Notes under the pieces: model-generated
Told to the model about the DNA's origin: nothing
Seen by the model: the letters and a program-made list of their open reading frames with translations, nothing else
Database searches by the model: none
Translations under genes and position numbers: made by a program
Shown: piece by piece, positions 2,168 through 23,874 of the stretch
Position numbering within the stretch: position 1 is the stretch's first letter
How the letters are laid out: each line of letters begins with the position of its first letter
Source: Macrostomum lignano
Taxonomy: Eukaryota
Direction of reading: 5' to 3'
Length of the DNA stretch: 23,874 nucleotides
Assembly: GCA_002269645.1 (NCBI GenBank)
Contig: NIVC01005170.1
Coordinates: 1 to 23,874 of the forward strand

Positions 2168-2488
2168 CCATGGTCAGGATCTTGTACCGGTGTACGCCGG
2201 AACGAAAATTGCTTCCGAAGCTCATGTACGCCAATGTACGCCAACGAACTTTTTATGGCACAAAAAATACGCCAAAATAAAATTACAAATTACGACCAAT
2301 ATTAACCGCTTGAAAATTTTTAATATTTAAAAAATTAATAAGTAAAAACTGGTAAATTTTTTTCTAAACCGTATAATACTAGTTCATTTTAACTATATTT
2401 GTTTTACTTTTAACTTCTTAGGAGACTATGCCAAACGTAAACTTACGCCGGAATCTTCCAGCGTACATGTATACCACCCAGAGTCTGG
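2168..2488. mobile_element. Putative non-autonomous DNA transposon (MITE-like, ~320 bp)
   Basis: Direct repeat GTGTGATTAC at 2159-2168 and 2488-2497 (8-10 bp TSD depending on boundary). Degenerate terminal inverted repeats: left CCATGGTCAGGATCTTGTACCGGTGTACGCCGGAA versus reverse complement of right CCAGACTCTGGGTGGTATACATGTACGCTGGAA. AT-rich non-coding interior. Confidence 0.5.
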
Positions 2489-2545
2489 TGTGATTACAGC
2501 GAAAAAGTTCGCTGTACTTTTAAACGCTGTTTTAAATGCAGTGTA

Positions 2546-3865
2546 CGAGAGGTGATCAAAAAGTTCTGCAAGTGACCTCACAACTCTGCGTTACAGCAGC
2601 CGATGCGTCTAATCAGTGTCACTTTCCCTCAAAGTACTTTCCACCACAGTACTTTGCACCGTTGCATGCGTGTGAACCATGTCTGAAAGCAGTCATGATA
2701 CTCAGAAGTTAGTATACCCTGTAGAGCTGAATGTACCACTTGGGCAAGGTCTTGTATGCGTGAAATGGCCTCCCAGAAATGACGGATTTGATCCTCGGGA
2801 ACAGCCAAAAGTCGCATGGTGCTAGGTCTGTAGAGTAGGGTGGATGAGGCAGCAGCTGGACCCCCTGCTGCTCCAGGTACGCCATGGTTGAAGCCGCCCT
2901 GTGCGGTGCCGCATTGTCATGGTGCAGCAGGAGTCGAGGTCCATGCCTGGTTCGCGCACGTTCCTGCCGCTCCTGCAGCACGCCTGGCAGAGCAGTGTCT
3001 GTGTAGTACCTGGCAGTCACTGTGGCACCCGCTGGAAGGATGTTCACTGATACAACGCCCTGAGAGTTGAAAAAAATGGTGAATATCCGCTTCCGACTGC
3101 GGAATCCGGTCTTCAGCACCTCGGGCCTAGGCTCATCTTCTGCCAGCCAGACCATGTTGGACTGCTTATTCTTCATGGTAAATAAGTAGATCCAAAATTC
3201 GCCTCGTGTGATGACATCCGACAGTCGTCGTGGGCCATGAGGGTCAAAAATTTGCACCCACAAGCGACAGATGCGCACCCTCTCTGCTTGCTGCTCCGGA
3301 GTGAGAAGATGGGGTACCCACCGAGTGCAGGTCTTTGTGTGGCCCAGTTGCTCATGCATAATGTTATGAGCACTTCCATAGCTGACACCAAGCTCATAGG
3401 CAAGGAATCTTAGCGTAGTGCTCCGATCCTCACGAATTATTGCATCGGCACGGGCCACGACATCTTGGGTCACGGATGTCCGGGTCGGCCAGACCTCGGT
3501 TCATCGATCGTTGAAGCTGTCCCGGCCTTCCGAAAAATGGCGCAGCCAGCGGGCAACCGTGTCAAATGATGGAGCAGAGTCAGCTAAAACATTCACCAGA
3601 TCGGTATGAATCTCAGTCGCTCGGCAGCCAAGTTGCATGCGCATAAATATGTAGAAGCGAACACTGTCTTTTAATGTTTCCATCAGCTACTGAAATCACA
3701 TGGAAAATATATGGCTGTGAAATTTGACTAGAGCACATTGGGAAGCCAAAATTCATATAAATATAACAAACAGATATAGCCGCATATGTGTAAGTTTTTA
3801 GCTTTTGCCGATTTTATAACTAAAAGCTATAACAAGAGGTTGCAGAACTTTTTGATCACCCCTCG
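2546..3865 (-). mobile_element. Tc1/mariner DNA transposon (mariner, DD34D), 1320 bp, decayed
   Basis: 26-bp TIRs CGAGAGGTGATCAAAAAGTTCTGCAA (2546-2571) and TTGCAGAACTTTTTGATCACCCCTCG (3840-3865), one mismatch. TA on both sides (2544-2545, 3866-3867). Transposase remnants inside. Confidence 0.95.
2619..3683 (-). pseudogene. Mariner transposase pseudogene
   Basis: HTH region, WVPHLL (WVPHEL motif), HDNAAPH and YSTDLAPCD with 34 residues between the 2nd and 3rd Asp. The first catalytic motif reads TRGEFW instead of TGDExW. Frameshifts near 3485-3510, ~2764 and ~2655; the repaired C-terminus is ...GGKYFEGK* (TGA at 2619-2621). Confidence 0.92.
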
Positions 3866-5011
3866 TACCGTGCCTGCAGCTGTCACAGTGTAAATGCACT
3901 TTATAACAACCCGGAATGCTAATGTCAATTCTTCATATCGCACGCTATCTGTGATAAATCGCTAATTTATTTACAAATTCATTCTGTCGCTCTTTACGGT
4001 CGAAAAAAATTAACATTTTTTATTCAATTGTTAATCTTAAATTGTTTTGCTGTCATTCGTAGAATAGGTTAAAAAAGCTATAAAAGCCTAGCCTAAAATA
4101 AAATTTATATTACATTAAAATAAGCTGCAACATTACAACCCTGTGAGCAAAAACTAAATTTCCATACAGGATACGCGCAGTTGTGAGTGTAAAGTCATTT
4201 TTAATTGTTAAATGTTAATATTTTTTATTTAGAGTAAATTATAGCGTGTAATGCATTGTTAGTTGGACCCAATTCTTTCAAGTTTTTGTGTAATTCTTTC
4301 AAATAATCATTTGTGCTTATTCATTTCGGCATGGTACATGTAACTAAATTAACGCGTATACACACATTTATAACTCTTGAAAATATAGAGAGACACGGGA
4401 TATTTCCGGCTTTATTTATCGATTAGTCATCTAACGGCTACACCTCTCTTTACACATTCTTTGCCCCTTATTTAAAGAGATATAGTTATCTGACATAATA
4501 TCAAGGTGACTTTAGTCCGCTAAACCTGAAAACGACGAAAAATTATGAATAAAAGAGTGATCATATTTCGATTAAAATCCAAGGCAATTGTTTTTTATAT
4601 ATTTTCTAAAAGTTACTTTTAACATGCTTCGTTGGCTACTCTAAGTACACGTCAGTTCCATTACGGGCTTAGAGTGCTTGCATGCAAACTAAAACTTTTA
4701 AAATTAGGCTAACGCTACTAAATCACAAATATTTAGACAATAGTAAGACTTAGAAATAGTATTTGTACGCCAATTTCGTCTAATTTAATAAATTGTCGTC
4801 AAAAAGTTCAGAATCTGATTTGCCGATATGTATCGAAAATAATTTATTTCGTTACAAGTGAATATGTTAGTTATCAGTTTACGATCTTACGTGTTGGCAA
4901 CATACGAAAATATTTAGAGAGTAATATCTAGTAGTATAAGTGTTAAATTAGTACTATTATTAAGCCCAGTAAAAGCGTTTTTTAAATCAGTGAAATACGA
5001 AGCAAAAGGAT

Positions 5012-5100: not shown

Positions 5101-7318
5101 GGCAGAAGGAGATGACTCAGAAAGTATACTTAATCAGTTAGCAAATTATTTTTTCATTTTAGAATTCAGGTTTAGGCTTTATTACATGAGAGAGAACTGG
5201 CCCATCAAAGGGAGTAAAATAAGCTTTGTCTTTAGAACTACAGCTTTAATCACTTTAATCATTTTAATCACTTTGCAAAAAAGCAAAGGGATCGTTTTTT
5301 AATTTAAACACTGCCTAAATTGGCTGGGTTTGGACTACACCTAGGGCCCTAAGGCCTAAAGCATCTTTAGCTAGTTTTTCGTCAACTCGTCGACGTCAAG
5401 GCGAACCGAGAAAGTCGTTATTTCCATTCTCTTTCGCCTTTTTGCTAATGAATTTCAAAGGCCTGGATCTGGATGCTTTGCATGAGCACCTTGTGTGTGG
5501 GCCAGGCCAAGAGACGAAAGCCGGGTCCGCGGGAGCCTTTTTTGGCAGTTTAAAGCCAGTTTGCGGATAAAAATGATGACGGGATGTCGCGAATCAAGCA
5601 GAAAGAAATCTATCTAGGTCTAATCTGTCAGGAAATCAGAACAAAAGCGATGAGAACTGCAGCTGAAGGACGGATTTATGGACACCCCCAGGACTAATTA
5701 TAGGAATTGTAGCAATTTAGTAATTTGTTATAATCGTTTAACATCACGAACAATTATGTTTTTTCGTCCTTACATGATTTGAAATTTAATTAATGCACTG
5801 CACAGTGGGGGTCCCAAGGAGCTTACTATTTGAACTAACTGCTGTTCGACACTACTCTGACGCCCCATCTTGAGTTAGGCTAAAGCTGCATTCGATTTGA
5901 GACTGGCGCCGGCACATGAGCTACGTACATGTATATAGGAACTTGAGAAAGATTTGCACAACATACAAATGGAATCAGTATCCCTTTTGTATAATTGGAT
6001 TAAGTTTCTCTTACACGTGACACGTGTTTTACGAGAGTGGACGACTACGTGTGTACACGGAACAGCTAGAACAGATGGTAAAACTTTCCTGTATTTAATT
6101 AATTAGGCTTGTTACATTTATTTTACGAATATAGATATAGGAATATAGAAATTTACGAATATCTATTTTACCTAATTGTGAAACGCTGCATCCACGACAG
6201 TGCCCTTGCCATGTCACTTCTATAACAGCTAAACTTTTATTAGAATTCAGCTTTGTTACATTAATATTTTCGGCGACTACTTAAATGTACTTAATATTTA
6301 CAGAGTATTCTCGTAGTACTTTACAGCTGCTGTTTTTGGCAGCAAATTTTGTGATGCTTCCTTCATAGATAACAGGAAGTCCAATTAGCGCAACAACGTT
6401 TGTTGACCGGAGAAAGTTTTCTTTAACAAGTTCGACTGCACTTGGAGACATTCAAACATTTGGAGACGGATAGCTAGCTCTCTGGTCAAATCGCTCTGGG
6501 ACTGTAATTCGAAATGAGCACTAAAATGTATCGAATGCCTACAACGGAAGCCATTCATTATTAAGCTTTACTTCTGTCTAAGATTTTTGGGCGTGGCAGT
6601 CTGGAAATCAATTACAGCATACAAAAATATTGATAAATTATCAAGGACTTAATTCAACAAATTTTTATTGAGTAAAAGTTTAGAGAAAGGGATTACGCCG
6701 TTTAAATTTAAGCTCTGGACCCTTTTAATGGATTACTGAATTGGAAACTTTTCGCAATATTGCGCTTCCTTTAATTTTGCCCATCAGTGAACTCGTAAGG
6801 ATTTAAGGGTTTTTATTAAACGAAAATCAGATTCTGCAGAGCTCTGAGGATTGAACAATCAATTTTCCAAACGTTTCTAAAGCCGCCTAAAGTATGTGCT
6901 TAAGTCATTAACTAGCGTTTACATCCGGGAACTGCAAGCGTCAGTGTTCGAGCGGATCTGATGTACCTGCTGAAAGTGTGCCTGCATGATAGAGCAGGTG
7001 TTTTACCATCATTCGATGGAAATGATTAAGCCGTACTTTGACAGATTTTTAATTAAACTGCAATCAATTCTTTTATTTCTGATTCAAGATTCACAGAGAA
7101 CAATAAAACAATTAAAATGAATCTTCAATATCCTGATTGGCATGAATACACGCATGAATTCACTTTGTCAGTTTGAATTCAAATTTGACAATTGGACAAC
7201 AGCGAATACTTATTAACCAAATTAACTTTATCAAACAGTGCTGTCACAGGCTTCTATAAAAATTATTAATATTATGTTATTTGATAGAAATTCACAGGCT
7301 TTCTCGCCCAATCTATCA

Positions 7319-7680
7319 TGAGTGAGTGAGTGAGTGAGTGAGTGAGTGAGTGAGTGAGTGAATGAGTGAGTGAGTGAGTGAGTGAGTGAGTGAGTGAGTG
7401 AGTGAGTGAGTGAGTGAGTGAGTGAGAGGGTGAGTAAGTGAGTCAGTCAGTCAGTCAGTCAGTCAGTCAGTCAGTCAGTCAGTCAGTCAGTCAGTCAGTC
7501 AGTCAGTCAGTCAGTCAGTCAGTCAGTCAGTCAGTCAGTCAGTCAGTCAGTCAGTCAGTCAGTCAGTCAGTCAGTCAGTCAGTCAGTCAGTCAGTCAGTC
7601 AGTCAGTCAGTCAGTCAGTCAGTCAGTCAGTCAGTCAGTCAGTCAGTCAGTCAGTCAGTCAGTCAGTCAGTCAGTCAGTC
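7319..7680. repeat. Compound tetranucleotide microsatellite (TGAG)~27 + (AGTC)60
   Basis: (TGAG)n 7319-7426 with one TGAA variant, a short imperfect junction, then perfect (AGTC)n 7441-7680. Confidence 0.98.
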
Positions 7681-8865
7681 AACAATCCGTTGCCGCTGCG
7701 GTGAAGTTGGTGACTGCGAGTGACTTGTCGAGATCAGCGAAGACAGCTGGCTGCCGAAGGCATCCGGGCGCAGGCGGCAGCTGAGCTCCAGGTTCTCGGT
7801 GGACAGGGCCGCGGCCTCGCCAGCTGCACCTCTGGCTCTGTTGATGTCGATGTCGTAGGGCCGGTAGCCACGGCAGCTGGGCGCGGATGCGCCGCAGATA
7901 ATGCGACTTCTGGCGGCCGCCGGTCGCCGTCCGGAGCAGTGAGCCAGCAGGGCTCTACGAAACAGCCTGGTGGTGCTCACGTACACCAGGAAGTTCACCA
8001 GACTGTCGAGCTGGGTCAGCAAATTCACAGAGCGCACCAGAACGGAATTCTTCAGCCGGATGTAGGCGAACACGGCGGTCGGGAGCTCCAGGGCGGCGAA
8101 CGCGAAGGCCAACAGGATGACAACGCGAGCCGCGTGCTTGTCGCGACGGGCTAGCGCGGAGGGACGCGTCAACTTGTGCGAGCAGCCTGCGCTGCCTTGG
8201 CCTTGGCCGCCTCCAGCAGCTCCCGAGCACTGCTGCGGACGCTTCCTCAGTCGATCAGCGATGAGCAAGCCGGAGACGAGCACCAATAGGAACGGTACCG
8301 AGGTCTGCAGAGTGTAGAACACGGTGGCGTACTTGGTGACCAGGTGCGACTCAGTGCAGGCCGAGTCCAACTCGCTAATGATGGCCAGCGGCAGGATGGG
8401 AGCGGCCAACAGGCCGAAGGTCAGCATTGATCGGCGACCTTTCAAGATGGCCTCGCCAGTTTTAGCGGATATCGGACGAATGACGGCGTTGAGACGCGAG
8501 ATGGCGATCACTACGACAGTCCAGTTGCGCATGGTCAGAAACGCTCGCAGGCAGCAGCCGATGACCAGCCGGGACGCCCCGTGTTCGACTCCGCAAGTCA
8601 GGCGAATCATTCTTCTTGCACCTAATCCGGCCAGTTCGAAGCAGACGTTGAGTCCGATGCTAAAGTTGAACAGGAGCTCGAATACGCTCAGGTAGCTAAG
8701 CAGATGACGAACTGTGGCACTCATCTCGCGACTGCCAACTGTCTGAAAGAGGAATAGAGCGTAGCCGCTCTGGACCAGGTTCAGTGCCCCCAGTCCAAGA
8801 AATGCACCGTTGAACAGCGAGCTGACAACGGCATCATGCGGAGAGGTTGAAGAGTTTGTTGCCAT
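7675..8865 (-). CDS. Intronless rhodopsin-class (class A) orphan GPCR, 396 aa, peptide-receptor-like
   Basis: N-terminal NSS sequon and seven hydrophobic segments with recognisable variants: TM2 [10 protein letters not shown]3 end [12 protein letters not shown] (DRY-equivalent), TM5 [15 protein letters not shown]6 [10 protein letters not shown]7 [10 protein letters not shown]. Uninterrupted ORF. Confidence 0.88.
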
Positions 8866-9611
8866 CGGGTTTGACTATTGATTGCTTTATTCTTATAAAC
8901 TGCAGTCTTGAATTGGAATGCGGCCAGTTTTAACTTAATTATGTAGGGCTGGGATTGAGGACTCAAATGCAGACAGCCTTGTATCCGTTTGGCCTCACCA
9001 TTCACTGTTAGTTTGATCCAGTTATTGGGTTTGAGCTGCTGGGCCAATCGCAATTGGCTCGATCGCATCAGTGAGCCGACTTACCTAGACAAGGAAGACA
9101 ATTATGCTGGCTACGTGACTACTGATTACTCGTAGTAAGGCTCACATTTCAGCTTAACAGTGCCGTAGAGGCAGGCTAGTGGGCTGAATGGCGTGCCTGT
9201 TTAAACGAGTAGCACAGTTGCTTTTTTGATTTTCAAATGGGCCGCGTTTAAAAGCAGCAATAAAAGGCATCCAACGGGCGAGCCTGTTTTGGATGTGGTG
9301 TCACGGAATGATCTCTTCCTTGCTCGACCAAGGAAAATGATCACGGAATAATAGTTGAAGGATGTCGCATCGCAATGCCGCAATGCCTACGACATCGAAA
9401 TCGTGTGGCACACAGCGCTGATGCAATTGTGCACATGGAGTCCTGAGCAGATACTGTAGACCAAGGACCACTAGAAGTTACGGTTGTATCAAAACGTAAC
9501 ACTTTCTTGTTTGCATTTCAGCTGAACTTTAAGTATATGATAATAGTATATTACGGCGCCCTCTGTTTTTCCCTCCCCTCCCCTTAAAGCATGGGTATTA
9601 CTATTATTGTG

Positions 9612-10560
9612 CCATAGACATTTGTGTCCTTGACAAAGTGGGACAGGAAATACGAGTAGAAAGGGGGTGTGGGGGCGAAGCCATCACCAAAAGCCATAGA
9701 CAAAACACGAAATAAGAATTTTTGCTGTAGTACAGTACTAACTTAAGAAGAGAAGAGAATAGAGTATACTGTATAGAGAATAGAATAGAATAGAGAATTG
9801 AAACTTATCGCACCACAGACTGCATACGGTTTGACTAAGACAAAACTAGATCTAGAAGCATGATCAACTATAGCAGTATCGCAGAGGGCGAGATAAGTGG
9901 ATTGAATGCTGATGAATTGGAATTTGTAACTCATTAATCTGCTGGACGCAGCCATGAATCGGCTGTCTCACAATACGACGGACTTCCATCGGTCGACTCG
10001 AGACGCATCAACGAGTTCCTTCTGAACGTGACGGAGTTTCCTGAAGTGGACGAGACGGACCTCCAGAAGATAACTAATCTGGAGAAGCTGCCGTTGTACA
10101 ATCAACAGAGAAGCAGACGGACATCTACTCTAGAAGACTGAAGGCTTTTCTGAGTGAAAGAGGTCTTTCAGGTATGTAGCAGGTAAGTTTAACTGCTGGA
10201 TTGATTAAATTGACAATTGTCGTTTTGTTTTTGTTGCATTTATGTTCTAGTTTTCACATGTTTCATGCAGAGTCGTTCTACAAATAAAGCGGTTGTGTAA
10301 CTGCCCACTAATTTGCATTAAAGTAAGTTTGACATAGACAAGTTTGATATTTCTTTCCTGCAAGCGGGCTTAAATGTAGTCTATGGCATTAAAAGGCAAG
10401 AATAAGTGCCCAGCGGGCACAAAGGTCATGGTACAATCGCCATTTAATAAGCATTCTATGTTCAGAATGTCCGAGGCATTTACGCTCGTAAATGGTCCCG
10501 AGGCGAGCGAAGCGAGCCGAGGACCAATGAGTGGGGCCAAGGACATTTTGACCATAGACA
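9612..10560 (+). mobile_element. Putative Crypton-like non-autonomous element A
   Basis: Direct repeat CCATAGACA at 9612-9620 and 10552-10560; inner inverted 8-mer TGTCCTTG (9625-9632) / CAAGGACA (10538-10545); frameshifted recombinase-N-terminus-like fragment inside; shares a subterminal GGGGGTGTG...GAAGCC motif with element B. Confidence 0.45.
9954..10171 (+). pseudogene. Fragment resembling the N-terminal region of Crypton/DUF3504-type tyrosine recombinases
   Basis: With two 1-nt frame corrections (after ATG 9954 and near 10083) it reads M(E)SAVSQYDGLPSVDSRRINEFLLNVTEFPEVDETDLQKITNL-EAAVVQSTEKQTDIYSRRLKAFLSERGLS. This resembles the F..x.EE.L..I......NT.K.T......F..FL.ER pattern. Ends at donor G|GTATGT (10172). 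Confidence 0.45.
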
Positions 10561-10583
10561 GCTTAATTTAATGGCTATTATTT

Positions 10584-11989
10584 TATATGAAATCAGATTG
10601 CTTATTTTTGGAATATTCCATCTGGCAGAGCCACTGCAGGGGGTGTGAAGCCCCCAAAGTTGAACCATAAACTTTTATGTAGAATTTCTCAAAACAGCTT
10701 AGAATTCTCATACAGTCTTAAATCTTTCTCGCGGGCCAAAGACAATGTTTTAGTAGGGATTTTCTTAAGACAGTCGGCAAGTGAAAGAATGTCTAAAACG
10801 GAGAGAAGCGAGTACGAAAAAATTAGTCTAACTGCTTTAGCGAGGATTCGTGCTGTTCTATTTGCTATGGCTGGCGCTGAGGAAGTCGTTGAATTCTTTG
10901 ATTTCTTCCGCTCATTTGAGAATTCACCTACAGCTGATGCGGTGCGTCCATCTTTACCTTCGACAAGCCGTATGGGTGAGTTGCTTGATTTGACCGACTT
11001 GGAGTTCCAGGATGTCTGAGAATCATCGGTCCCTCTGCCAAGGTGATTGATGGTCTTGGATTGCGTCCAGTGCTTCACAAGGCATCTCTGGTCCAGAAGC
11101 AAACCCGAGCAACGGTCCCACCGGTGAGCTTGTCGCTTCTGATGAGCCGAGGCCAAATACACGCGTCTGAAGACGATTACGATCATAGATAAGTCAAACA
11201 AGTGGGGAATGATGTATTTATTACTCAGTTCATGTCAAGCGAGAGGAAAGTTAAGATAAAATCCTGCAACGTACTTACCAACGACTTATCCAAACAAAAA
11301 ACCACAATAAGTATTCCTGACGACTTACTTGACTTGACTCTGCCGGACATGGATTTTAATCTTGACGTGCTCATGGTGGCCGAAGGCGACAAACAACGTG
11401 ATGGAGTGGTTTTGAGTCGGCATGCGATGATGAGTTGAATTTGCAACTGAATAAAGCGACATCTGAAAAGACTAAAAAGAAGGCTGATTGGATCGTTGGC
11501 GTATTCAAGCATTGGCATGAGCAGAAGACTGCTTGGTGAACGGGTGGTGGTCCATCGTTAATGGTCCTGAAAGATCTCTCGGAGATGACGAAGCAAGATC
11601 TGAATTATCTTCTGAAGTACTTCGTTATGGAAGTACGCAATCAGGATGGAGGACGGTACACTTCCACCACTCTGAAAGACTTTGTGTCCAAGATTCAATG
11701 GCACTGGCGCCGTTAACTCCGAGAGTCCTAGTCCTAAGAAGATGCGAATCGAGATCTGTGGCGAATCAAATAAGGTGACGATTACTTTCGATTAACAATG
11801 CTTGTTTTTCGAGAACTTAATGACGAAGGTGCAGTTCTTCGTTCGTTCTTCGTTTCTTACACGTTATTTCGTTCTAACAGAAATTCTAAGGTACTCGGCC
11901 AAATAAATTTCTTTCGCATCAAATAAATGCTTTTCTTAGTCTATGACCGGGCCTAACTGGGTAATAAATAAGCAATCGGATTTTATATG
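10584..11989 (+). mobile_element. Crypton-like tyrosine-recombinase transposon B, internally deleted (1406 bp)
   Basis: 6-bp terminal direct repeat TATATG (10584-10589, 11984-11989) immediately outside 18-bp inverted arms AAATCAGATTGCTTATTT (10590-10607) and AAATAAGCAATCGGATTT (11966-11983), 17/18 complementary. Decayed DUF3504/Crypton-type coding sequence inside; AATAAA signals at 11902, 11922 and 11963. Confidence 0.72.
10867..11795 (+). pseudogene. Decayed Crypton/DUF3504-family tyrosine recombinase lacking the catalytic domain
   Basis: Frame 11411-11698 reads FESACDDELNLQLNKATSEKTKKKADWIVGVFKHWHEQK...(TGA 11537)...LKDLSEMTKQDLNYLLKYFVMEVRNQDGGRYTSTTLKDFVSKIQ. This matches the ELNY.L..FV.E.R..DG..Y...TL motif of ZMYM2/3/4, QRICH1 and Crypton proteins. 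It then jumps to a C-terminal-like tail NGTGAVNSESPSPKKMRIEICGESNKVTITFD* (TAA 11793-11795). The acidic low-complexity N-terminus is broken by stops and frameshifts. Confidence 0.75.
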
Positions 11990-13185
11990 CTAATAAGTCT
12001 AAATCAGTTGCACATAAAATATACTTTTTCGCCACGCTTTGTGAGTTTTATTTCTCTTTTAAGATGACACAAAATTTATATACGAGCTACATGTATCTGT
12101 AGACATGTGGGACATGTGGGTTAAACTTCTGTGGCACAAAGTTAGTGCATGTTTCTTTTAAGAAGTTAAATAGAATGCTTCTTTGAAGACAACAGTCGCC
12201 AAATACGTAAAGGGCGGGCTTTCAAATAGCTTCTAGCGGTCCATGAGTCAGATGCGCTCACCGATAGAGGCTTTTTGCAACCGGGAGAAGCCTTTAAAAA
12301 TGAACTGATCAATGTTTTCTAATTTTAGAATCAAACGAAAAATAGTAAAATTACTCGGCTTTTCATAGAAACAATGCTTATTGACGGTTTTTTATTTTAC
12401 TTTAAAAAATTAATTAATAATAGTTCTGCTGATCATTAAGCCTCTGCTTGGAATATATCTGACTCAATGCAGTTCACAGTTAATATCTTATCTATTAAGT
12501 TTAGCACTAGACCCTCTTCGAAAATATTTATACCTTTCTTGAGAAGCACTTACAGCTCTTGGACTGGGCTTTCTGTCGCGCATCAGAATTTCCTTTGAGT
12601 TGACGAGAGAGGAGGCGGGACAGTTCTCTTCATCCCTTTTATCCCGAATCCCAACAAGATTGAGTGAAGCCCGTCGACTGAAGATTATCTTTCAGTCAGT
12701 CGGGGCATCTGAAGAGACGGCGGAAATATGAATGACAGTGATCTAGGCAGCACTGCAGCTTGACGGACTTCAAAAAGAAAAAGAATAACCTTTTGGTGCA
12801 TTCCAAAGCGGAAACAGAATTGCTTTTTCATCATTGGGCGAATGAATATCCCAAAGTAAAATGGATATTGACTGGATATTTGATTTTCATATTTGACCGG
12901 CTTCCGGGATGCTACTTGCCTCCCCTCGCTTGAAAGCTCAATGATAGCCTCATTCATTTTTACCAAAGAATGCGTACCAAGAATCTTGAGGAGCGATAAA
13001 TTGACTGTTGTAGCGCTGCGTGTTTCAAGTAGTCTGGTGGCTTGATCTTAAGAATGTATTCACGTTTAGATTATCACTGATACGATGGAAATATCGCAGA
13101 TACAACAGTTTCACAGATACTTCAGCGCCACCGATACATCAATGGGACAAAATACTCCAATGTCAGAGGCACTCAAGTGTTATAT

Positions 13186-14240
13186 ATGATGCGTCAGTGT
13201 CACAGATGATGCGTCAGTGTCACAGATGATGCGTCAGTGTCACAGATGATGCGTCAGTGTCACAGATGATGCGTCAGTGTCACAGATGATGCGTCAGTGT
13301 CACAGATGATGCGTCAGTGTCACAGATGATGCGTCAGTGTCACAGATGATACGTCAGTGTCACAGATGATGCGTCAGTGTCACAGATGATGCGTCAGTGT
13401 CACAGATGATGCGTCAGTGTCACAGATGATGCGTCAGTGTCACAGATGATGCGTCAGTGTCACAGATGATGCGTCAGTGTCACAGATGATGCGTCAGTGT
13501 CACAGATGATGCGTCAGTATCCCAGATGATACGTCAGTGTCACAGATGATGCGTCAGTGTCACAGATGATGCGTCAGTGTCACAGATGATGCGTCAGTGT
13601 CACAGATGATGCGTCAGTGTCACAGATGATGCGTCAGTGTCACAGATGATGCGTCAGTGTCACAGATGATGCGTCAGTGTCACAGATGATGCGTCAGTGT
13701 CACAGATGATGCGTCAGTGTCACAGATGATGCGTCAGTGTCACAGATGATGCGTCAGTGTCACAGATGATGCGTCAGTGTCACAGATGATGCGTCAGTGT
13801 CACAGATGATGCGTCAGTGTCACAGATGATGCGTCAGTGTCACAGATGATGCGTCAGTATCCCAGATGATACGTCAGTGTCACAGATGATACATCAGTGT
13901 CAAAGATACATCAGTGTCACAGATGATACGTCAGTGTCACAGATAATACGTCAGTGTCACAGATGATACATCAGTGTCACAGATGATACGTCAGTGTCAC
14001 AGATGATACATCAGTGTCACAGATGATACATCAGTGTCACAGATGATACATCAGTGTCACAGATGATACATCAGTGTCACAGATGATACTCAGTGTCACA
14101 GATGATACATCAGTGTCACAGATGATACATCAGTGTCACAGATGATGCGTCAGTGTCACAGATGATACATCAGTGTCACAGATGATACTCAGTGTCACAG
14201 ATACATCAGTGTCACAGACACGACGTCAGTGTCAGATGAT
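13186..14240. repeat. 20-bp minisatellite (CACAGATGATGCGTCAGTGT)n, about 52 units
   Basis: Near-perfect 20-bp period 13201-13900; 17-20 bp variant units (ACG/ACA in place of GCG) toward 14240; no spacers. Confidence 0.97.
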
Positions 14241-16191: not shown

Positions 16192-19100
16192 GTAAGTTTA
16201 GAGTGGCTTCTTAGTCTGTAGAATAGTGGTTTCAGCTAATACTGAATTCGTGCTGGATGCACTTTACAAAAAACTGCAGGATCACTACGGTCATTGGAAA
16301 CTGTTTCGCCAGAGTCGAGCAATGGGAACGGAGCGGCAACAGTTGGTTATTAGTCACATGAAAGTAAGTTGTAAATATTAACGTTATTGTGTTATACTCT
16401 TGTTTACTTACATGCTGTACTTGTACTTTTTCCAACTGATCGCACCTCCCAATTTTCACCAGCGTGGCCTGCGCCATCGCCTCGATCGTCGGTTCGCGGC
16501 TATCCAGGAGAGCAGCGAGGCCAGTCGTGGCGTTATCAGCGACGGCCCAACGCCCGACGGCATTGCAGGTGGCGGCGGCGGTGGCGGCGGTGGCAGCGGT
16601 GGCGGTGATGTACTTTTAAACGGAAGACTAGCTGCGGAAGGTACAAATGCATCAGCCTCGGAGCCTCTGGCATCAGCTCGCGCTGCCGAGGTTACGCCAC
16701 GTCCGAGGCCAGCAGACGAGCACGAGTCGCTAGAGTCCGACAGGTCCACCGTACTGTTTCAGCGCTACTCGCAGTACGGCGTACAGCGCTCCAACTCCAC
16801 ACTCAGCACAGCGGGTGTCATCCCGGTCGACTTTCTTCATCCGGAAACTGAGTCTACGCCGCCGGCCGCCGGACCGGCCACGTTGGCGGCCGATCCGCAA
16901 CAGGACGAAAAAGTAAAATCGCTGCTGGACAAGGAGCTGACCTTCGTGAACACGTTTGCCGTCGCTTCCGAACTGGAAGAAGTCCTCAGCAGGCAGTCGT
17001 CCTCCATGACGGCCCTACCACCGATCGGGGCTCGAACTCGGGACGACGCCAAGACTCTGCTACTGTATGTGACGTCCAGCTTAGGTGATTTTGATGCCGA
17101 GCGAGCGGCTATGGCCGAGCATCTTGTGCCACATCTGCGGGACACTGCGCGCAGCTTTGGTCTGGACTTTCGTCTGATTGATCCGCATTTTGGCTGCCGG
17201 TTTCACGCCTGCGACAACCACGAAGATATGAAAATCTGTCAGGAGGCTCTTGCCAAGACGAAGCTGTATAAGGATCGGCTAAATCATGTGGTATGTCGGA
17301 TGCGTCTTTCTAGCGAATTAACTTTAATGCACAGTAATTTGATCGAAACTGGTAACTTTCGAATGCATGTAGTCGGATACCGGTGTGTTTGATCAAAAGG
17401 GATGTCAGCTTAAACTGCGGAATAGAAATTAAAGTCGGCAAGAACTAGCAAACACTGGAAACGCCAGGAAGGGAGGTTGATGGTGCATGTCTTGGCGTTT
17501 CTAGTCGACTGCTCTGACAAGTTAGTCCGCTTGGTCCAGAGTTTTGCTTCGGGCTTCTTCGGATAGGTTGACATCCCCTTTGATTAGTGAAGAAATTTAT
17601 TATTATTGAGTACTTGCCTATGTATAGTTAGTGCATAGCTTAAGCAAGTGATAAATCAAGTATATCGGTTCCCTTCCTCTCAGATCCTACTCGGAGACAA
17701 ATTCGGCAAGCCGAGCAGCCCGCCGACCATTGATCGAGCCGAATTCGAACTAATCCGGGGCGAATACAACTCGGCCTACCAGAAGCTGCAGCAACTGCGA
17801 GTTGAGCGTCAAAAAGAGCTGGAAGAGATGGAGACAGAGCGCAAAGTCCAGGAAGAAAAGCGCAACAGAGCCGGCGCAGACGATGATGATACGGATGATG
17901 ATTTTGAAGACGCCTCAACTCGTCGAAACAACCGGCGGACAAGCGTCAACAGGCGCCGGAGCAGCGTGAAGCCGAAGCCGAAGGCAAGCCTCACATCGGT
18001 AGCGAAGACGGTGGGCCGGGCGATGCTTATTCGCAAGTCTCAATTGGAGGACAACATACGCAGCATAGAGCCCTACTTGCCTAGCGAAAACTTCCTGGAT
18101 ACCTGGTATTACCTGGATAGCAGTCGCGTGCCAGTAGTTTACCGGCTAGCGCAGGTCAGCAGCGTTCTGCCGGAATTTTCCGCTTACAGAATGCAGGTTC
18201 AGGACCAGTGGCAGCGGACGGACCAGCAACTGTTGGCCACGCTCACCTTCTGCTCGCGTCGACTAGTGAAAAATGACGTCATGCCCGAGTCTGAGAGCAC
18301 CATCCTTGCCCTAAACAAGACGTCCGTGCTGGAGCAAGAGTTGCGCCAGACCGTGCTTCGATCGCGTGGCAGCCACTCGGACGCTCTGATGTTTGTGCGA
18401 ACTTTTGACAACTTGAAAGATCAAGTAGGCCAGCCACTCGCGGCCTTATATACGGACATTGAGCCGGGACGTGACGAGGTCGACTTAGAGGCTGCGCACG
18501 CTTTTGTTACGGTCAAACGGGATCTGGAATTGATGGTGTGTCAATGAACCGAGCGTTTTACTATGGTTGTAAACAATTTTAAACCAGGCAGATTCTATCA
18601 CTACCAAATTCAGTTTAGCGTTCTGCTTTATTATAAAAAACTTGCTGAAAATTTCACCCTCAGGTGCCAGAAGACATCATCCACCGGGCTCAGATCAGTT
18701 GGATCCCAGAGGGCGGCGTCAATCCCGAGCGGTCGCGCATTCACGAGAATCACGTGAAAAAAATCTGCGCCCAGATTATCCGCGTCCTAGAGCCGCAGAT
18801 TCGTCAAATTGGACTGGATCTGGAGAGGCACCAGACTGAGCAGCAGAGTCTGATGCACACTATTCAGGAGAATGAGAACTACTGCCTGCAACAGTAATTA
18901 TATTCATTGCTTTATTTACTTAAAGCAAGTTCTCCGAATAGAGCATATGGTTCAGAGCATGTATCAGGGCATATGAACTCAACTAACCAACCGCTCTTTA
19001 CCCGATGCGCAATAAAAATACGCTTTGGTGGAGGTGATTAATTAGACAAGTGCAGCATGCAGAACTAAGTAAGAAAGGGAAAAGTATGCAGCACTCTTAT

Positions 19101-22100
19101 TCGGTGAACTATGGTACAAACTCAAGGCCGATTAATAAAGGCCATGCATCCATAGTACATTTTTCTGATCTGCCCGGTCTCACTCTATTCATAGTTATGA
19201 AAGACGTGTAGCCAAAACAAACTAGCTTTGATGCGTTTGTATTACTTACAGTAGCTTCTAAGTATTAAGCTGTGATTCTTTTTTCAATTTTCTCTCAGTG
19301 CTGCTGAATGCTACGGCCGCAAGACCATGCTAGCCAAGATGAAGGCGTACCTGAACTCGGACAGCATGATCCCCATGGTGGTGCACGGACCGTCGGGTAG
19401 TGGCAAGACCACTTTGATGGCGAAATGCTTCTCAAAATTGAAAGACTGGCTGCCGGAGAGTTCGACTTGTGTTGTTCGCGTTGTTGGAGTGTCCAGCAGG
19501 TCTGGGAACGTCCGCTACCTGTTGGGAAGCATCTGCCGAGAATTGCTGTTAAAGTGGAAAGAACAAGGCGACCCACCGCAGGTAACGAGGCTTTATTAAT
19601 TTTTATTTTAATTGACTCTGACATGGATTCGGGTTTCTTAGGGTCCTTAAGCCTGGTAGTTGTTAAGTATGTTACCTCCAGGTGACATGGTTTACCTCCA
19701 GGTGACGTGGGTTACCTCCAGGTGACGTGGGTTACCTCCAGGTGACGTGGGTTACCTCCAGGTGACGTGGGTTACCTCCAGGTGACGTGGGTTACATCCA
19801 GGTGACGTGGGTTACCTTCAGGTGATGTGGGTTACCTCCAGGTGACGTGGGTTACATCCAGGTGACGTGGGTTACCTCCAGGTGATGTGGGTTACCTCCA
19901 GGTGATGTGGGTTACCTCCAGGTGATGTGGGTTACCTCCAGGTGATGTGGTTACCTCCAGGTGATGTGGGTTACCTCCAGGTGATGTGGGTTACCTCCAG
20001 GAAACATATTCCCTTATTCTAGGTAGAGCGAGTTTATTTAGCTCAAACTAGCCAAGTGAGCTATAGTCTAATGAGATGTAGATGTCAAATAAAAACCTAC
20101 ACATAATGCCTAGTACATATTTGATATTTCACTAATTCGTTTATAAGTGACTGGTTTTTAAATAGGTTCTATGTGCGCATCTATCTAAAACCTTTTTCAC
20201 CAGCTAACACTTAAACTTGTCTGCGTCTTTCTATGGGGCTGATTTGAAATTTCAATATAATCTGGAATTTTATTTTCCAGAAACGTTTCGCGAGCAATCC
20301 AGAGGAGATGCTGGTACAGAGTGTTTCAAATTTCAAATTTATTTATGCGTTTTTAACCTACTACAATGATCAACTTCGAATGCTATCAGAATTAATTAGC
20401 AACTTTATTCTTGTAATTGTAAATTCCGGATTGACTATCTAATCAAGTTAATTACAAAATTTGACCAGATTTGCACACATTCATCTCACTAACCTGTTTG
20501 AATAAGAACTATGACAACAAGTATATATTTATCTATGCTTGCCGTAATCATAAAGATATTATTCCAGACCCGAAAATTTGTTAATTGTTTAATGACAACA
20601 TTTTTACGACTTTCGATTCAAATTCTCAACAGTTGTGATTTACAATTGGGAACATTGTCAGTTTTCCTGATGAAAATAAAAACACGTTTGAGGGCTATAT
20701 GTATAATACTCTAACTGTTTCAAATGTTTGCAACAGTTGACTGCAGCAGCAAAGTCAATCAAAACCGTCTCTCCTACACGCAGGATTTCGCTGGCCTGGT
20801 CAACGAGTTCACTGCTCGACTTCAACAGGCCTCTCGCGACCGTCCGCTTGTCATCTTGCTGGACTCCCTGGGCCAGCTCACCGAAGAGTACCAAGGTCGT
20901 CGGTGCCACTGGCTGCCGAAGGTGTTGCCGAAATACGTCAAGGTGATCGCATCAACGGTTGGCGACGAACGGGTCGGCGTGCTGGGCCAGCTGAAGAGCA
21001 TGTACTCAGACGCCTCCCCGGATCACTTCATGGAGATGGAGCAGCTGACGGTCGAGGAAGCTGAGAAGATTTTGAGTTCGTGGCTAGCTAAAGAAGGCAA
21101 AACACTGACCACACCGCAGCTTGAGCATGTACTGTCGGCTTTTAATTGCGTGCCGTTGCCTCTTCAGCTGCGACTCAGCTTCCACGAATCCTTAAACTGG
21201 CCGCCCAGCTTCTTGCCCCGAGAATTTGCAGCCAAGACTCTGAAACAGTCGGTGACATTCTACTTGAGCCGACTGGAGTCTGGATTCGGCGATTTGCTTG
21301 TTAAACGAGCGCTCGGATACCTGACGGCCGCCAAGAACGGCTTGACAGAAGCAGAACTACTCGACATTTTGTCGCTCGACGACCACGTGATGGACGTGCT
21401 CAACTTTCAGTTTCATCTGCCTGTGCGTCGCTGCCCCCCGATCGCTTGGCTGCGCCTGCGAAACGCACTCGGTGAATTCTTGACAGAAAAATCCGTAGAC
21501 AACTGTGTCACTATCGTCTGGGCATTCAACATGTTCAATGAAGCAGCCGCGGAGCGCTACTTGAACCAGAAGGAAGCCGGTGCTGCACAAGGCTCTCGCC
21601 GAATACTTCGACGGAATGTGGGCCGGCAACAAGCGAAAGCCGCACCTGGGCAACGAGGCCGGCTCCAACCGCTTTGTCAGCTCTCAGCCATACTACTTCG
21701 AGCGTCAAGAGCCGCCGGGTTTCGTCTGCAACGACCGAAAACTTGCCGAGCTGCCTTGGCACCTGAGAGAGTCGCAGCAGTTTGAATCGTTGAAACAAAA
21801 GTGCCTGTGCAACTTTGATTTCATTCTGGCCAAAATGTTGGCTTCGTCGGTGCGACATGTGTTGGATTTGTACGAATCTGTGCTAAGCGCCGAGCCTCGT
21901 GACAAAGACCTACGACTGATATCCAACTCTTTGTACTTGTCTCGAGCCGAGCTGGAGCTAGACCCGAAGCAACTAGCGTCACAGCTTCTTGGACGCATCA
22001 CGGATGTGCTCAAAGCTGATCGGCCAAAGGCTCCAGCAGATCCGAAGAAGTACCCATTTGTGCACGCCCTCTTTTATCGCGCTCGGCGCAACAACGTTCC

Positions 22101-23874
22101 CACTCTTGTCCCATCAAAGTCGTGCATGACAACGCCTAGCGAGATTGTCCTTGATCTCCTGCAGGGACACCGACTGCCAATCACGGCTGTCTGCATCAGC
22201 GAAGATGGAACCACGGGATTCACTAGCTCGCAGGAGGACACAATTAAAGTGTGGGACTTGACGAATAGTAGAGTCGTAAGCACTATTGAAGGCTCTGGCA
22301 GTCAGGTACTGTCCATGACGCTTGGCCGTCAGGAATCGGTGTTGATCACATCGGAGTTAACATGCGTAAAGGTGTACGCAGTGAAGATAGGCTGTCTGCT
22401 TTTCACCATTCCAGTTCAGGATGATCCTTGCTCTGTTGTCGTCAATGGAGACACAAACAACTTGGTTTGCTTTCACCAGGGTATCTGCGTGATGCGCACT
22501 GGAATTTGGAGCGCTTAACTAAGGTCTGCGACAAGACGTTAACAGAGACAGGACTGCACCAGGATCGCACCGTGGTTGTCTCTACCCGATGCAACGCAGA
22601 TTTAGTTCTGTACGGCCTTAGAGGTTCCAATTTCGCTCGTGTTGTCCACTGCCGCAGTGGACAGGACGTACTAAAGCTGTCCTGTCTTGACAAAGCGTCC
22701 CTAGTGACGGCTGTGCAGACTAGTCGCGAGTATTACATTGTAGCTTGCCAGGCTACCGACTTGCACACTCGCGTGCACATGTTCTTCTTGGAGCTATTTG
22801 ACACCGGAAAAGGCAAAAGCGTCCGACGCATCAAGGGTTGTTCATCTGACAGTGTAGTCGATGAGCTAATGCTAACTAACATTCAACAGCACGTGATCTC
22901 CTTGAATCCTATGCGAGACAAGAATATGACTGATATTGTGGCATGGAACCTGGAGACCGAGGAGCACAAACACTTTACTCGTCACCCAGGAATTTCGTCA
23001 ATTGGTGCTGTTTACGATTTTCGTCGTGTGATCACGGGCTCGCTGGCCGAGAACGCCCTTCGCATGTGGAACGTGCAGCAGAACATGCAATCCGCGCCGC
23101 AAAAGACCGAAAGCCTCGTAAATCTGGCTGATATAGTTATCGACGCAGGTAACAACCGGTACGCACTGACAAAACTTTCCGACAATAGCGTAATTCACGC
23201 TTGGAGTCTCAGCGCGAATAAATTCTCCGGCAAAGTTGTTAAATCTGCCAAAAGCATCGCTGGGCCCAATGACATGGTGCTGATGGACAGGCACTTTGTC
23301 ATTGTTCTAGCAAGACCAGGTTTCTCGCCTAAGGTGCCGAACGCAAAGTTCGTGTACCAGACACTAACTATCTTCGATATTCAAAAGCAAAAATTTCACT
23401 GTCAATTTAAACAACGTACTCATTGTACCGTGCGCCTACGAGGAATATCACGTGATTCATGGCAACCAGCTGTTGTGCATAAATGAGTTTCACACCAACT
23501 TTTTGGTGTACAGCCTAGAGTCTGGTGAAATTATTCGCCGAATTAAGCCAGAATTCTCGTTTGACCCTAACAAGAAGCGGCCGTCCGCCCTGCTCGAGGG
23601 TAGCGTGCTGCAGCGCGAAAACGAAATGTTTGAAGAGTTCATCAACAGTCGAAAGCAGACGGTTTTCATGACACCCTGGGACGCAGAAACGAGAGCAAAT
23701 CGGCAAAAACTCGACGCTATCGAAGCGAGTGGGAGGAGAAAAGCAACGAGCTGACGAGCTTGAGCAGGAGAAAGGAAACGGCATCGCGGACTTCCTAATT
23801 AGCAAGGACCAGTCCACCGTTGTGTCCAGCTTTTTTGCTCACCACATCTGCGTATTCAACTTGTCCAACGGGAC
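16075..23874 (+). CDS. NWD2: NACHT and WD40 repeat protein (NWD1/NWD2-like STAND NTPase); multi-exon, 3'-truncated by the window edge
   Basis: Exons join in frame over GT-AG introns 16192-16462, 17291-17683, 18536-18663, 18894-19298 and 19582-20783. Product has a DUF4062-like N-terminal domain, Walker A GPSGSGKT, Walker B LVILLDSL, the ALGYLTAAKNGLTEAELLDILSLDD winged-helix motif, and WD40 repeats. NWD1 versus NWD2 orthology is not resolved. At least five frameshifts lie in the last exon. Confidence 0.88.
16463..17290 (+). CDS. NWD-like gene exon: low-complexity extension with poly-Gly plus first half of the DUF4062-like domain
   Basis: Acceptor TTTTCACCAG| at 16462, donor GTG|GTATGT at 17291. 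LLLYVTSSLGDFDAERAAM...GLDFRLIDPHFG resembles the RIFTSSTFTD...ERNALM...GLEFQVVDMRWG motif. Confidence 0.85.
17684..18535 (+). CDS. NWD-like gene exon
   Basis: Acceptor CCCTTCCTCTCAG| at 17683, donor ATG|GTGTGT at 18536. Contains ILLGDKFG...EFELIR and FLDTWYYLD...PVVYRL motifs. Confidence 0.85.
18664..18893 (+). CDS. NWD-like gene exon
   Basis: Acceptor TTTCACCCTCAG| at 18663. Phase-2 donor CA|GTAATT at 18894 completes His (CA+T) with the next exon. Confidence 0.82.
19299..19581 (+). CDS. NWD-like gene exon with the NACHT P-loop
   Basis: Acceptor TTTTCTCTCAG| at 19298, Walker A GPSGSGKT at 19387-19410, donor CAG|GTAACG at 19582. Confidence 0.9.
19671..20001. repeat. Intronic 20-bp minisatellite (GTTACCTCCAGGTGACGTGG)n, ~16.5 units
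   Basis: 20-bp period with one 19-bp unit. The 16 GGTGA-containing halves are 8 TGACGTGG, 7 TGATGTGG and 1 TGACATGG. Confidence 0.97.
20281..20313 (+). CDS. Candidate 33-nt in-frame microexon of the NWD-like gene (KRFASNPEEML)
   Basis: Strong acceptor TTTTATTTTCCAG| at 20280, donor CTG|GTACAG at 20314, phase 0-0, stop-free. Confidence 0.4.
20784..23874 (+). CDS. NWD-like gene long exon (Walker B, helical and winged-helix domains, WD40 repeats), interrupted by small indels
   Basis: Acceptor CCGTCTCTCCTACACGCAG| at 20783, phase 0 (DFAGLVNEF). Homologous reading continues across frame changes at ~21575, ~22500, ~23407, ~23682 and ~23741, ending in ...GIADFLISKDQSTVVSSFFAHHICVFNLSNG at the window edge. 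Confidence 0.85.

Follow-up and report, generated by a model that had tools for sequence, protein, structure and literature searches.

Which mobile element leaves a 1.4-kb insert between two copies of TATATG, with an inverted arm just inside each copy, and how would such an element mark its ends for movement? The question is raised by contig NIVC01005170.1 of Macrostomum lignano (assembly GCA_002269645.1), which was analysed over its whole 23,874 nucleotides (nt); this stretch is referred to below as the window. The original prediction, made from the letters alone, described a Crypton-like transposon whose ends reconstitute a tyrosine-recombinase site of the loxP/dif kind. CryptonA, the animal lineage of these transposons, encodes a single enzyme, a tyrosine recombinase of the DUF3504 type with a QRICH1-type domain in front of it at the N terminus.

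The repeats around the insert are real and do not arise by chance. The predicted TATATG copies and the two 18-base pair (bp) arms, X and X', which are inverted and complementary at 17 of 18 positions, were confirmed by direct reading and by repeat search (Table 1). The search lengthened the inverted repeat to 23 nt (91%) because the flanking ATAT is self-complementary. The direct repeat is in truth 10 nt long, with ATTTTATATG at 10580-10589 and 11980-11989, and its first 4 nt (ATTT) also close the right arm. When up to three mismatches were allowed, the arm was found at these two sites alone in 23.9 kb (0.04 expected). The sole other 18-nt inverted repeat with at most one mismatch and within 5 kb was the terminal pair of a mariner element (2543/3868). 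About 10% of simulated windows held some 18-nt inverted repeat of this quality, and in none of 300 was such a repeat accompanied by a 6-bp direct repeat at its flanks. The right arm was matched in 0 of 2000 shuffles of the element body. Extension of inverted or direct similarity into the outer flanks was not significant; for the inverted similarity about one third of 1000 shuffles scored as high. Joined conceptually, the ends give an 18-6-18 arm-spacer-arm arrangement with 17/18 arm symmetry, and the proposed loxP/dif-type site holds only as geometry.

The coding remnant indicates what the arms enclose. The window peptide matched PF25561, the QRICH1 domain found on the N-terminal side of DUF3504, at E = 5.2e-7 (30.2 bits against a cut-off of 30.8 bits). 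It had been put forward as a diagnostic DUF3504 peptide; it is indeed a Crypton-type peptide, of the preceding domain rather than of DUF3504, and an in-frame TGA breaks it. Searched exhaustively, 1.84 billion representative proteins yielded (at E <= 1e-3) 196 homologues of the peptide, the best at 54% identity (E = 4.8e-29). By tblastn, positions 11405-11707 aligned with residues 35-136 of P0001 (53% identity, E = 4.7e-35) and residues 39-132 of P0166 (52%, E = 8e-29). The frame then changes across a junction, after which 11718-11792 aligned with the last 26 residues of P0166 (58% identity, E = 1.6e-5). This C-terminal tail, which in full-length relatives ends in KKMRIEICGESNKVTITFD before the stop codon, is conserved in their alignment and retained in the window. 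Absent by both tblastx and tblastn are residues 133-423 of P0166 (about 291 codons, corresponding to 205-1062 of L127), which comprise the whole DUF3504/tyrosine-recombinase domain.

A catalytic R-H-R-Y tyrosine recombinase is thus not encoded in the window copy. A recombination system merely invisible in the track of open reading frames (ORFs) had been anticipated; its recombinase domain has been deleted. No reverse transcriptase or DDE transposase gave a Pfam match in any other frame of the element. Nor was an intact domesticated-gene ORF found, the locus showing a stop, frameshifts, the 291-codon deletion and inverted repeats on both sides. Judged by homology, the insert is Crypton-derived and of the CryptonA type, as the PF25561 match, the 196 homologues, the DUF3504 domains of the relatives and the retained tail all bear out. 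Because the recombinase domain is deleted and a stop and frameshifts are present, the window copy is a dead, internally deleted and non-autonomous derivative, an ordinary relic. With its catalytic domain lost, it could have moved only with a recombinase from an intact relative.

The copy retains its 5' region, the N-terminal domain, the C-terminal tail, a 3' untranslated region (UTR) with poly(A) signals, and both ends. Positions 11161-11198 resemble 10-43 of L132, a related transcript contig, in its 5' UTR (as good a score came from 1% of 300 shuffles), and the likeness of the 5' region to this UTR starts at about 11160. Positions 11919-11969 show similarity to L130 in its 3' region, with a score of 28 where the highest of 300 shuffles reached 25. 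No significant internal duplication was found in the 5' region. Further candidates for Crypton sequence were dropped: an N-terminal motif seen by eye at 9955-10170, with no match to 193 relatives; a 76-amino acid (aa) ORF at 10797-11016 and a peptide at 11202-11438, without a Pfam match or a match to the same relatives; and a box-II-like match at 9184-9300 on the minus strand (E = 1), around which the translation shows nothing more. A separate observation concerns the deletion point. The closest N-domain relative, P0001, stops right after ...QYHW (L128, from SRR30276804, 497-502), with the ORF resuming downstream in L128, and the window deletion starts at the same position. Breaks or frameshifts may recur at this point, or it may mark the edge of an intron.

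The full-length relatives are short, multi-copy, intronless ORFs of 410-475 aa. They carry PF25561, then DUF3504 (PF12012), plus a weak Phage_integrase match. Among 11 aligned relatives R215, K249, R348, H371 and Y379 were invariant, and the position of the first histidine held H, Q or T. The profile of this alignment matched the human QRICH1 structure 9hjt (E = 6e-18) and, more weakly, the archaeal tyrosine recombinase XerA (5hxy, E = 0.015). In the latter match NxSLR...TGH...Y of the relatives stood in register with HxLRH...GH...Y. Since the catalytic Arg, Lys, Arg, His and Tyr are kept and this motif is in register with that of XerA, this Crypton clade looks catalytically competent. Domesticated DUF3504 genes are mostly without catalytic residues (PMC3212892; PMC13465315).

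Further copies were sought in several ways. Comparison of the window with itself gave no second copy of its family. Word-index protein searches with the frameshift-joined translation and with the 101-aa peptide also gave none, this index missing relatives that the exhaustive search finds. Ten window ORFs and the ORF of a neighbouring G-protein-coupled receptor (GPCR) had no exact match in the protein collection. Scanning with the arms, which had been suggested as a route to full-length copies, yielded more than 120 matches in metagenome contigs and six in viral contigs. All were single arms without further similarity and are therefore chance matches.

Two related families proved to be multi-copy. 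The M. lignano family (cluster P0011) has at least nine 441-aa proteins at >=90% identity (an intact 441-aa protein of M. lignano is PAA85249.1), and four genomic copies, L133-L136, share 97.5-99.2% identity across 1807-1850 bp and lie within unrelated flanks. They begin with GTATACATTCTCC and end with CACTTTCTGTAGGTT. None of the four has a target-site duplication, only GT or TAGGT microhomology being present. Family C consists of L129 and L137, from one ENA assembly and 3.5 kb long, and a target-site duplication is again absent from both copies. The absence in two multi-copy families fits a tyrosine recombinase and argues against a DDE enzyme for the clade. A piggyBac identity, considered for the M. 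lignano ends on account of TTAA plus CCTA..GAAAG, was rejected because the left flanks have no TTAA and target-site duplications are absent. No DNA similarity was detected between the window and the four M. lignano loci. One of these, L136, has the Crypton copy flanked by a direct repeat of host DNA of about 165 bp (96% identical; 4578-4738 and 6558-6724), which could be a trace of circle reintegration by homology or a local duplication.

The three related families and the window share one layout: a foldback of about 100-150 nt, arm X, the ORF and the inverted arm X' (Table 1). In all four M. lignano copies the right-terminal 13 nt are an inverted copy of internal positions 4857-4869, which lie just after the 150-nt foldback at the left end. 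The outer 4 nt of both arms are TTAA in the three relatives, (T)ATAT(G) being the counterpart in the window, and conceptual joining of the ends would give CTTTCTGTAGG-TTAA-CCTACTGAAAG and similar sites. Inverted arms, as predicted for one locus, thus recur in three related families with a short identical AT-only bracket. Because the same layout holds in these families, the arms are a feature of this Crypton clade and not a peculiarity of a single locus.

The foldbacks are far more stable than shuffled sequence in all four families (z = -6.1, -11.4, -14.3 and -16.9). That of the window folds as DNA at -31.6 kcal/mol (z = -6.1), with none of 200 shuffles as stable. The apex is GCGAAGC, an extraordinarily stable DNA mini-hairpin (PMC13037366), in three of the four families; family C has GCC-TTC-GGC. 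Among the M. lignano copies the apex is inverted, reading GCTTCGC in L133 and L136 (at 4778) and GCGAAGC in L134 and L135 (at 4777), and this flip-flop matches two sub-groups of the copies. Alignment of the window foldback with those of M. lignano was not significant, and what they share is position, size, fold and short motifs. The foldback may belong to the element, or may serve it as a landing pad.

Some related sequence lies outside the Crypton units. At 9600-9705 the window holds a degenerate foldback-like sequence, with two CCATAGAC motifs around GGGGGCGAAGCC and without Crypton arms, which may be a solo copy of the foldback family. The motif CCATAGAC/GTCTATGG clusters round the window element (9612, 9694, 10380 and 10552, with a variant at 11939) and also occurs in L133-L136 and L130. 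In the M. lignano loci, where an 83-bp satellite of L135 also contains it, the motif is over-represented 4- to 10-fold, and its distance from the Crypton ends is often 45-116 bp. Either a Macrostomum-like flatworm as the source of the window or a preference of the element for such repeats may lie behind this.

Table 1. Coordinates of the features of the window and of the related loci.
Sequence	Feature	Position	Strand	Evidence
Window	Mariner-type element with 29-bp terminal inverted repeats (97% identical); decayed transposase ORF 2712-3500	2543-3868	- (ORF)	PF01359, E = 2e-8
Window	(AGTC)n microsatellite, 90 copies, overlapping the 3' end of the minus-strand GPCR ORF	7321-7681
Window	Single-exon rhodopsin-family GPCR ORF	7675-8865	-	PF00001, E = 3e-6
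Window	Foldback F, 145-nt imperfect hairpin; apex GCGAAGC 10507-10513; ends 5-10 nt before the left arm	10435-10579	+
Window	TATATG, left copy of the direct repeat; with the preceding ATTT makes ATTTTATATG	10584-10589	none	Sequence reading
Window	Left inverted arm X, AAATCAGATTGCTTATTT	10590-10607	+	Repeat search, mismatch scan, shuffles
Window	5' region, including frameshifted degenerate N-terminal codons	10608-11404	+	No homologue by Pfam or by blastp against 193 relatives
Window	Remnant of the N-terminal QRICH1-type (PF25561) domain of a CryptonA-type protein; TGA 11537-11539	11405-11707	+	Pfam, tblastn
Window	Internal deletion junction; reading frame shifts	11708-11717	+	tblastx, tblastn
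Window	Conserved C-terminal tail SESPSPKKMRIEICGESNKVTITFD; TAA stop 11793-11795	11718-11795	+	tblastn to P0166, alignment
Window	3' UTR; AATAAA 11902-11907 and 11922-11927; TAGTCTATGACCGGGCCTAA 11937-11956	11796-11965	+	Sequence reading
Window	Right inverted arm X', AAATAAGCAATCGGATTT; right terminus of the element by analogy with two multi-copy relatives	11966-11983	+
Window	TATATG, right copy of the direct repeat	11984-11989	none	Sequence reading
Window	AAATCAGTTGC in the right flank, 11 nt past the repeat; equals the first 12 nt of X (AAATCAGATTGC) minus one base	12001-12011	+	Sequence reading
Window	Two 20-bp minisatellites with different units, 53 and 17 copies, 95% matches	13186-14234; 19671-20001
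Window	Multi-exon NACHT/WD40 gene with NWD1-type winged helix, about 16.4 kb to the window end	16382-23800	+	PF25469, E = 5e-17
Window	Foldback; X AAATCAGATTGCTTATTT; X' AAATAAGCAATCGGATTT	10435-10579; 10590-10607; 11966-11983		0/2000 shuffles
M. lignano (L134)	Foldback; X TTAACCTACTGAAAG; X' CTTTCTGTAGGTT(AA), right terminus	4706-4854; 4855-4869; 6543-6557		5/2000 shuffles
Family C (L129)	Foldback; X TTAAAATACTGTT; X' AACTGTATTTTAA, right terminus	4149-4252; 4253-4265; 7617-7629		43/2000 shuffles
L131 (single contig)	Foldback; X TTAATTCACTTTAATGA; X', perfect 17-nt inverted copy	about 193-330; 333-349; 2174-2190		0/2000 shuffles

We favour, at a probability of roughly 0.5, a reading in which the 1.4-kb unit is a deleted CryptonA-type copy whose mobile unit runs from X to X', with the bracket as crossover core and the foldback as preferred landing site. 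The 18-bp arms would be the element's own recombinase-binding half-sites. Recombination across the AT-rich bracket (TATATG in the window, TTAA in three relatives) would release a circle carrying X'-core-X, and the circle would reinsert, by the reverse reaction, at a target sharing the core. The core would be left on both sides without any staggered-cut duplication. TATATG would accordingly serve as the crossover region, a circular intermediate would exist, and the adjacent foldback would lie outside the unit as the site where it prefers to land. A circle that uses a short shared sequence has been proposed as the Crypton mechanism (PMC3212892).

This reading explains why the bracket stands on both sides in every family, why 4 of the 10 identical nt in the window belong to the arm, and why the last two bases after X' vary in M. 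lignano (TTAA three times, TTTT once). The overlap of ATTT with the arm would follow from target microhomology, which a staggered-cut duplication would not give. The short match to X in the right flank of the window (12001-12011) could represent a degenerate half-site of the target or could have arisen by chance.

Several observations weigh against the favoured reading. The window family is known from one copy, so the flanking repeat is seen at one locus, and the M. lignano copy L133 has TTTT after X' where the other three have TTAA. Published work found no terminal repeats, direct or inverted, in animal Cryptons, even across 50 copies of one family (PMC3212892), and the 2026 Glomhopper paper identified neither repeats nor boundaries in CryptonA elements of Glomeromycota (PMC13465315). 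In both multi-copy relatives the copies become similar from the foldback's left edge onward, some 100-150 bp to the left of X. A shared unit that begins there would give an X'-foldback junction in those relatives, not X'-core-X. Apex orientation tracks the M. lignano sub-groups, which favours a foldback that travels with the element. The boundaries first proposed (10584-11989), and the simple 42-bp circle junction with them, may therefore be wrong, the left one being possibly about 150 bp too short because the foldback is inside the shared unit in these two relatives.

The observations on the foldback sustain the main competing account, which we regard as possible though doubtful. The element would be the same dead Crypton, with a mobile unit of about 10435-11983; the left TATATG would be linker within this unit, and the right copy would belong to the flank. 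Recombination would then act on a long palindrome, X'-foldback-X. The arms would be separated by the foldback in the circle and would meet only if it extrudes, and a cruciform or hairpin nucleated by GCGAAGC could unite them. It is favoured by the position of the foldback, which falls within the region shared between copies in both multi-copy relatives, where the right terminus is exactly X', and which lies within about 0-10 nt of X in all four families (z = -6 to -17). The stable mini-hairpin apex (PMC13037366) in three families and an apex flip that follows the M. lignano sub-groups point the same way. By inspection, GTACAATCGCC at the start of the window foldback also resembles the M. lignano left terminus GTATACATTCTCC, although this left-terminal signature rests on one copy. 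The account leaves the 10-nt identity ATTTTATATG unexplained, however, since the self-complementary ATAT covers only four of its ten bases, and the arm-free sequence at 9600-9705 suggests that foldbacks also occur alone. A broader proposal embraces the clade as a whole: its ends would form a composite site, of inverted arms round an AT-only core plus a 100-150-nt foldback with a GCGAAGC apex, and recombination would be assisted by the hairpin or cruciform, much as integron and CTX-phage recombinases work on folded DNA, with the apex flip-flop as its trace. Such a site is undescribed for any eukaryotic transposon, and we consider the proposal speculative and rather unlikely.

Inverted terminal repeats (18 nt, 17/18) with a flanking duplication are also the textbook signature of a DDE cut-and-paste transposon, which could have captured or fused with a Crypton fragment; TATATG would then be an ordinary target-site duplication. 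There is precedent for such a composite in MarCry-1_FO, a mariner-Crypton (PMC3212892), and internal-deletion derivatives are typical of cut-and-paste elements. This explanation is nevertheless improbable. All coding similarity is to Crypton-type proteins, with no transposase remnant in any frame, and the Crypton-type 3' region extends up to the right arm, which leaves no room for sequence of a host element. Arms occupy the same position in three Crypton relatives, two of them demonstrably without target-site duplications, and a 4-nt overlap of direct repeat and arm is unusual for such a duplication. The arm termini are not known to resemble the terminal motif of any DDE superfamily.

A Crypton fragment might instead have landed in the middle of a small palindromic repeat that was already there, with a TATATG duplication of its own, and the arms would be the two halves of that repeat. 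Around these elements foldback repeats abound, and insertion at the centre of a palindrome gives exactly such a picture. The inverted similarity ends at 23 nt, however, with none that is significant in the outer flanks, for which reason the idea that they stem from a longer palindrome, older than the insertion, was rejected. The arms also accompany the element into different flanks in M. lignano and family C, and we hold this origin to be very improbable. Coincidental repeats around a decayed Crypton-like or domesticated DUF3504-gene pseudogene are scarcely credible even in an AT-rich region where about one simulated window in ten holds some such inverted repeat, given the 0/300 simulations with both repeats, the 0/2000 shuffles that matched the arm, and repeats that exactly enclose the 5' region, ORF and 3' UTR in a layout found again in three relatives.

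Like CryptonA (Kojima and Jurka 2011, PMC3212892), the family has one DUF3504-type recombinase with a QRICH1-type N-domain and no second enzyme, and the window relatives are likewise without target-site duplications. Derivatives with an internal deletion but with both 5' and 3' parts retained are also known, as in CryptonI-1N1_RPro and CryptonA-1N1_OL (PMC3212892). Unlike the published animal Cryptons, the window copy carries inverted arms of 18 bp together with a direct repeat of 6-10 bp, and its relatives have 13-17-nt TTAA-bracketed arms with a foldback by the left arm. Because no terminal repeats were reported for the published elements, clean inverted arms on a CryptonA-type element would amount to a new structural variant. 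The original prediction had credited Cryptons in general with short terminal direct repeats, which is right for fungal and stramenopile elements, whereas none are reported for animal ones (PMC3212892; PMC13465315). In CryptonF and CryptonS these repeats of 4-6 bp are the presumed recombination substrate, and a circular intermediate was proposed (PMC3212892). The proteins of these groups differ in having GCR1_C or another C-terminal domain, and inverted arms are undescribed there. The four Crypton groups were not treated by their authors as securely monophyletic (PMC3212892).

Resemblances extend beyond Cryptons. Fungal Starships (DUF3435 captain) are also eukaryotic tyrosine-recombinase transposons, some with terminal inverted repeats and direct repeats of target identity; they differ in being giant, cargo-carrying and confined to fungi, with DUF3435 instead of DUF3504. 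A circular Starship intermediate has been reported (bioRxiv 10.64898/2026.09.21.753150). The joined window ends resemble loxP (13-8-13), dif (11-6-11) and the lambda attP core in having inverted arms round a 6-bp asymmetric spacer, and the integrated element looks like attL plus attR. Unlike those of loxP and dif, the window arms are longer (18 bp) and are putative half-sites; in the relatives, should the foldback of 100-150 nt belong to the mobile unit, it would separate the arms in the circle. Integron attC and CTX-phage attP are folded imperfect palindromes recognised by bacterial tyrosine recombinases. The foldback resembles them as an imperfect palindrome of similar size, which is only an analogy, drawn from the conserved foldback and its stable mini-hairpin apex. 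The homologous N-terminal domain and the DUF3504 fold are shared with QRICH1, ZMYM2/3/4, KCTD1 and KIAA1958. Those are conserved host genes with extra domains, while the relatives keep the Arg, Lys, Arg, His and Tyr.

The element sits in intergenic space between the GPCR and the NWD1-like gene, and the window is animal nuclear DNA. The mariner-type element and the tandem repeats listed in Table 1 lie elsewhere in the window.

Ever since animal Cryptons were described, it has been an open question how they recognise their ends and how they move. The window relic does nothing itself, and its value lies in the arms, which led to a layout that recurs in four families. This recurring end architecture suggests a modestly novel lead on how the transposon class marks its ends. 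If the layout is functional, it supplies concrete substrates for work on the mechanism, namely arm-core-arm with or without the foldback. If it holds true, the intact, 97.5-99% identical and recently active M. lignano copies would be a candidate pair of recombinase and site.

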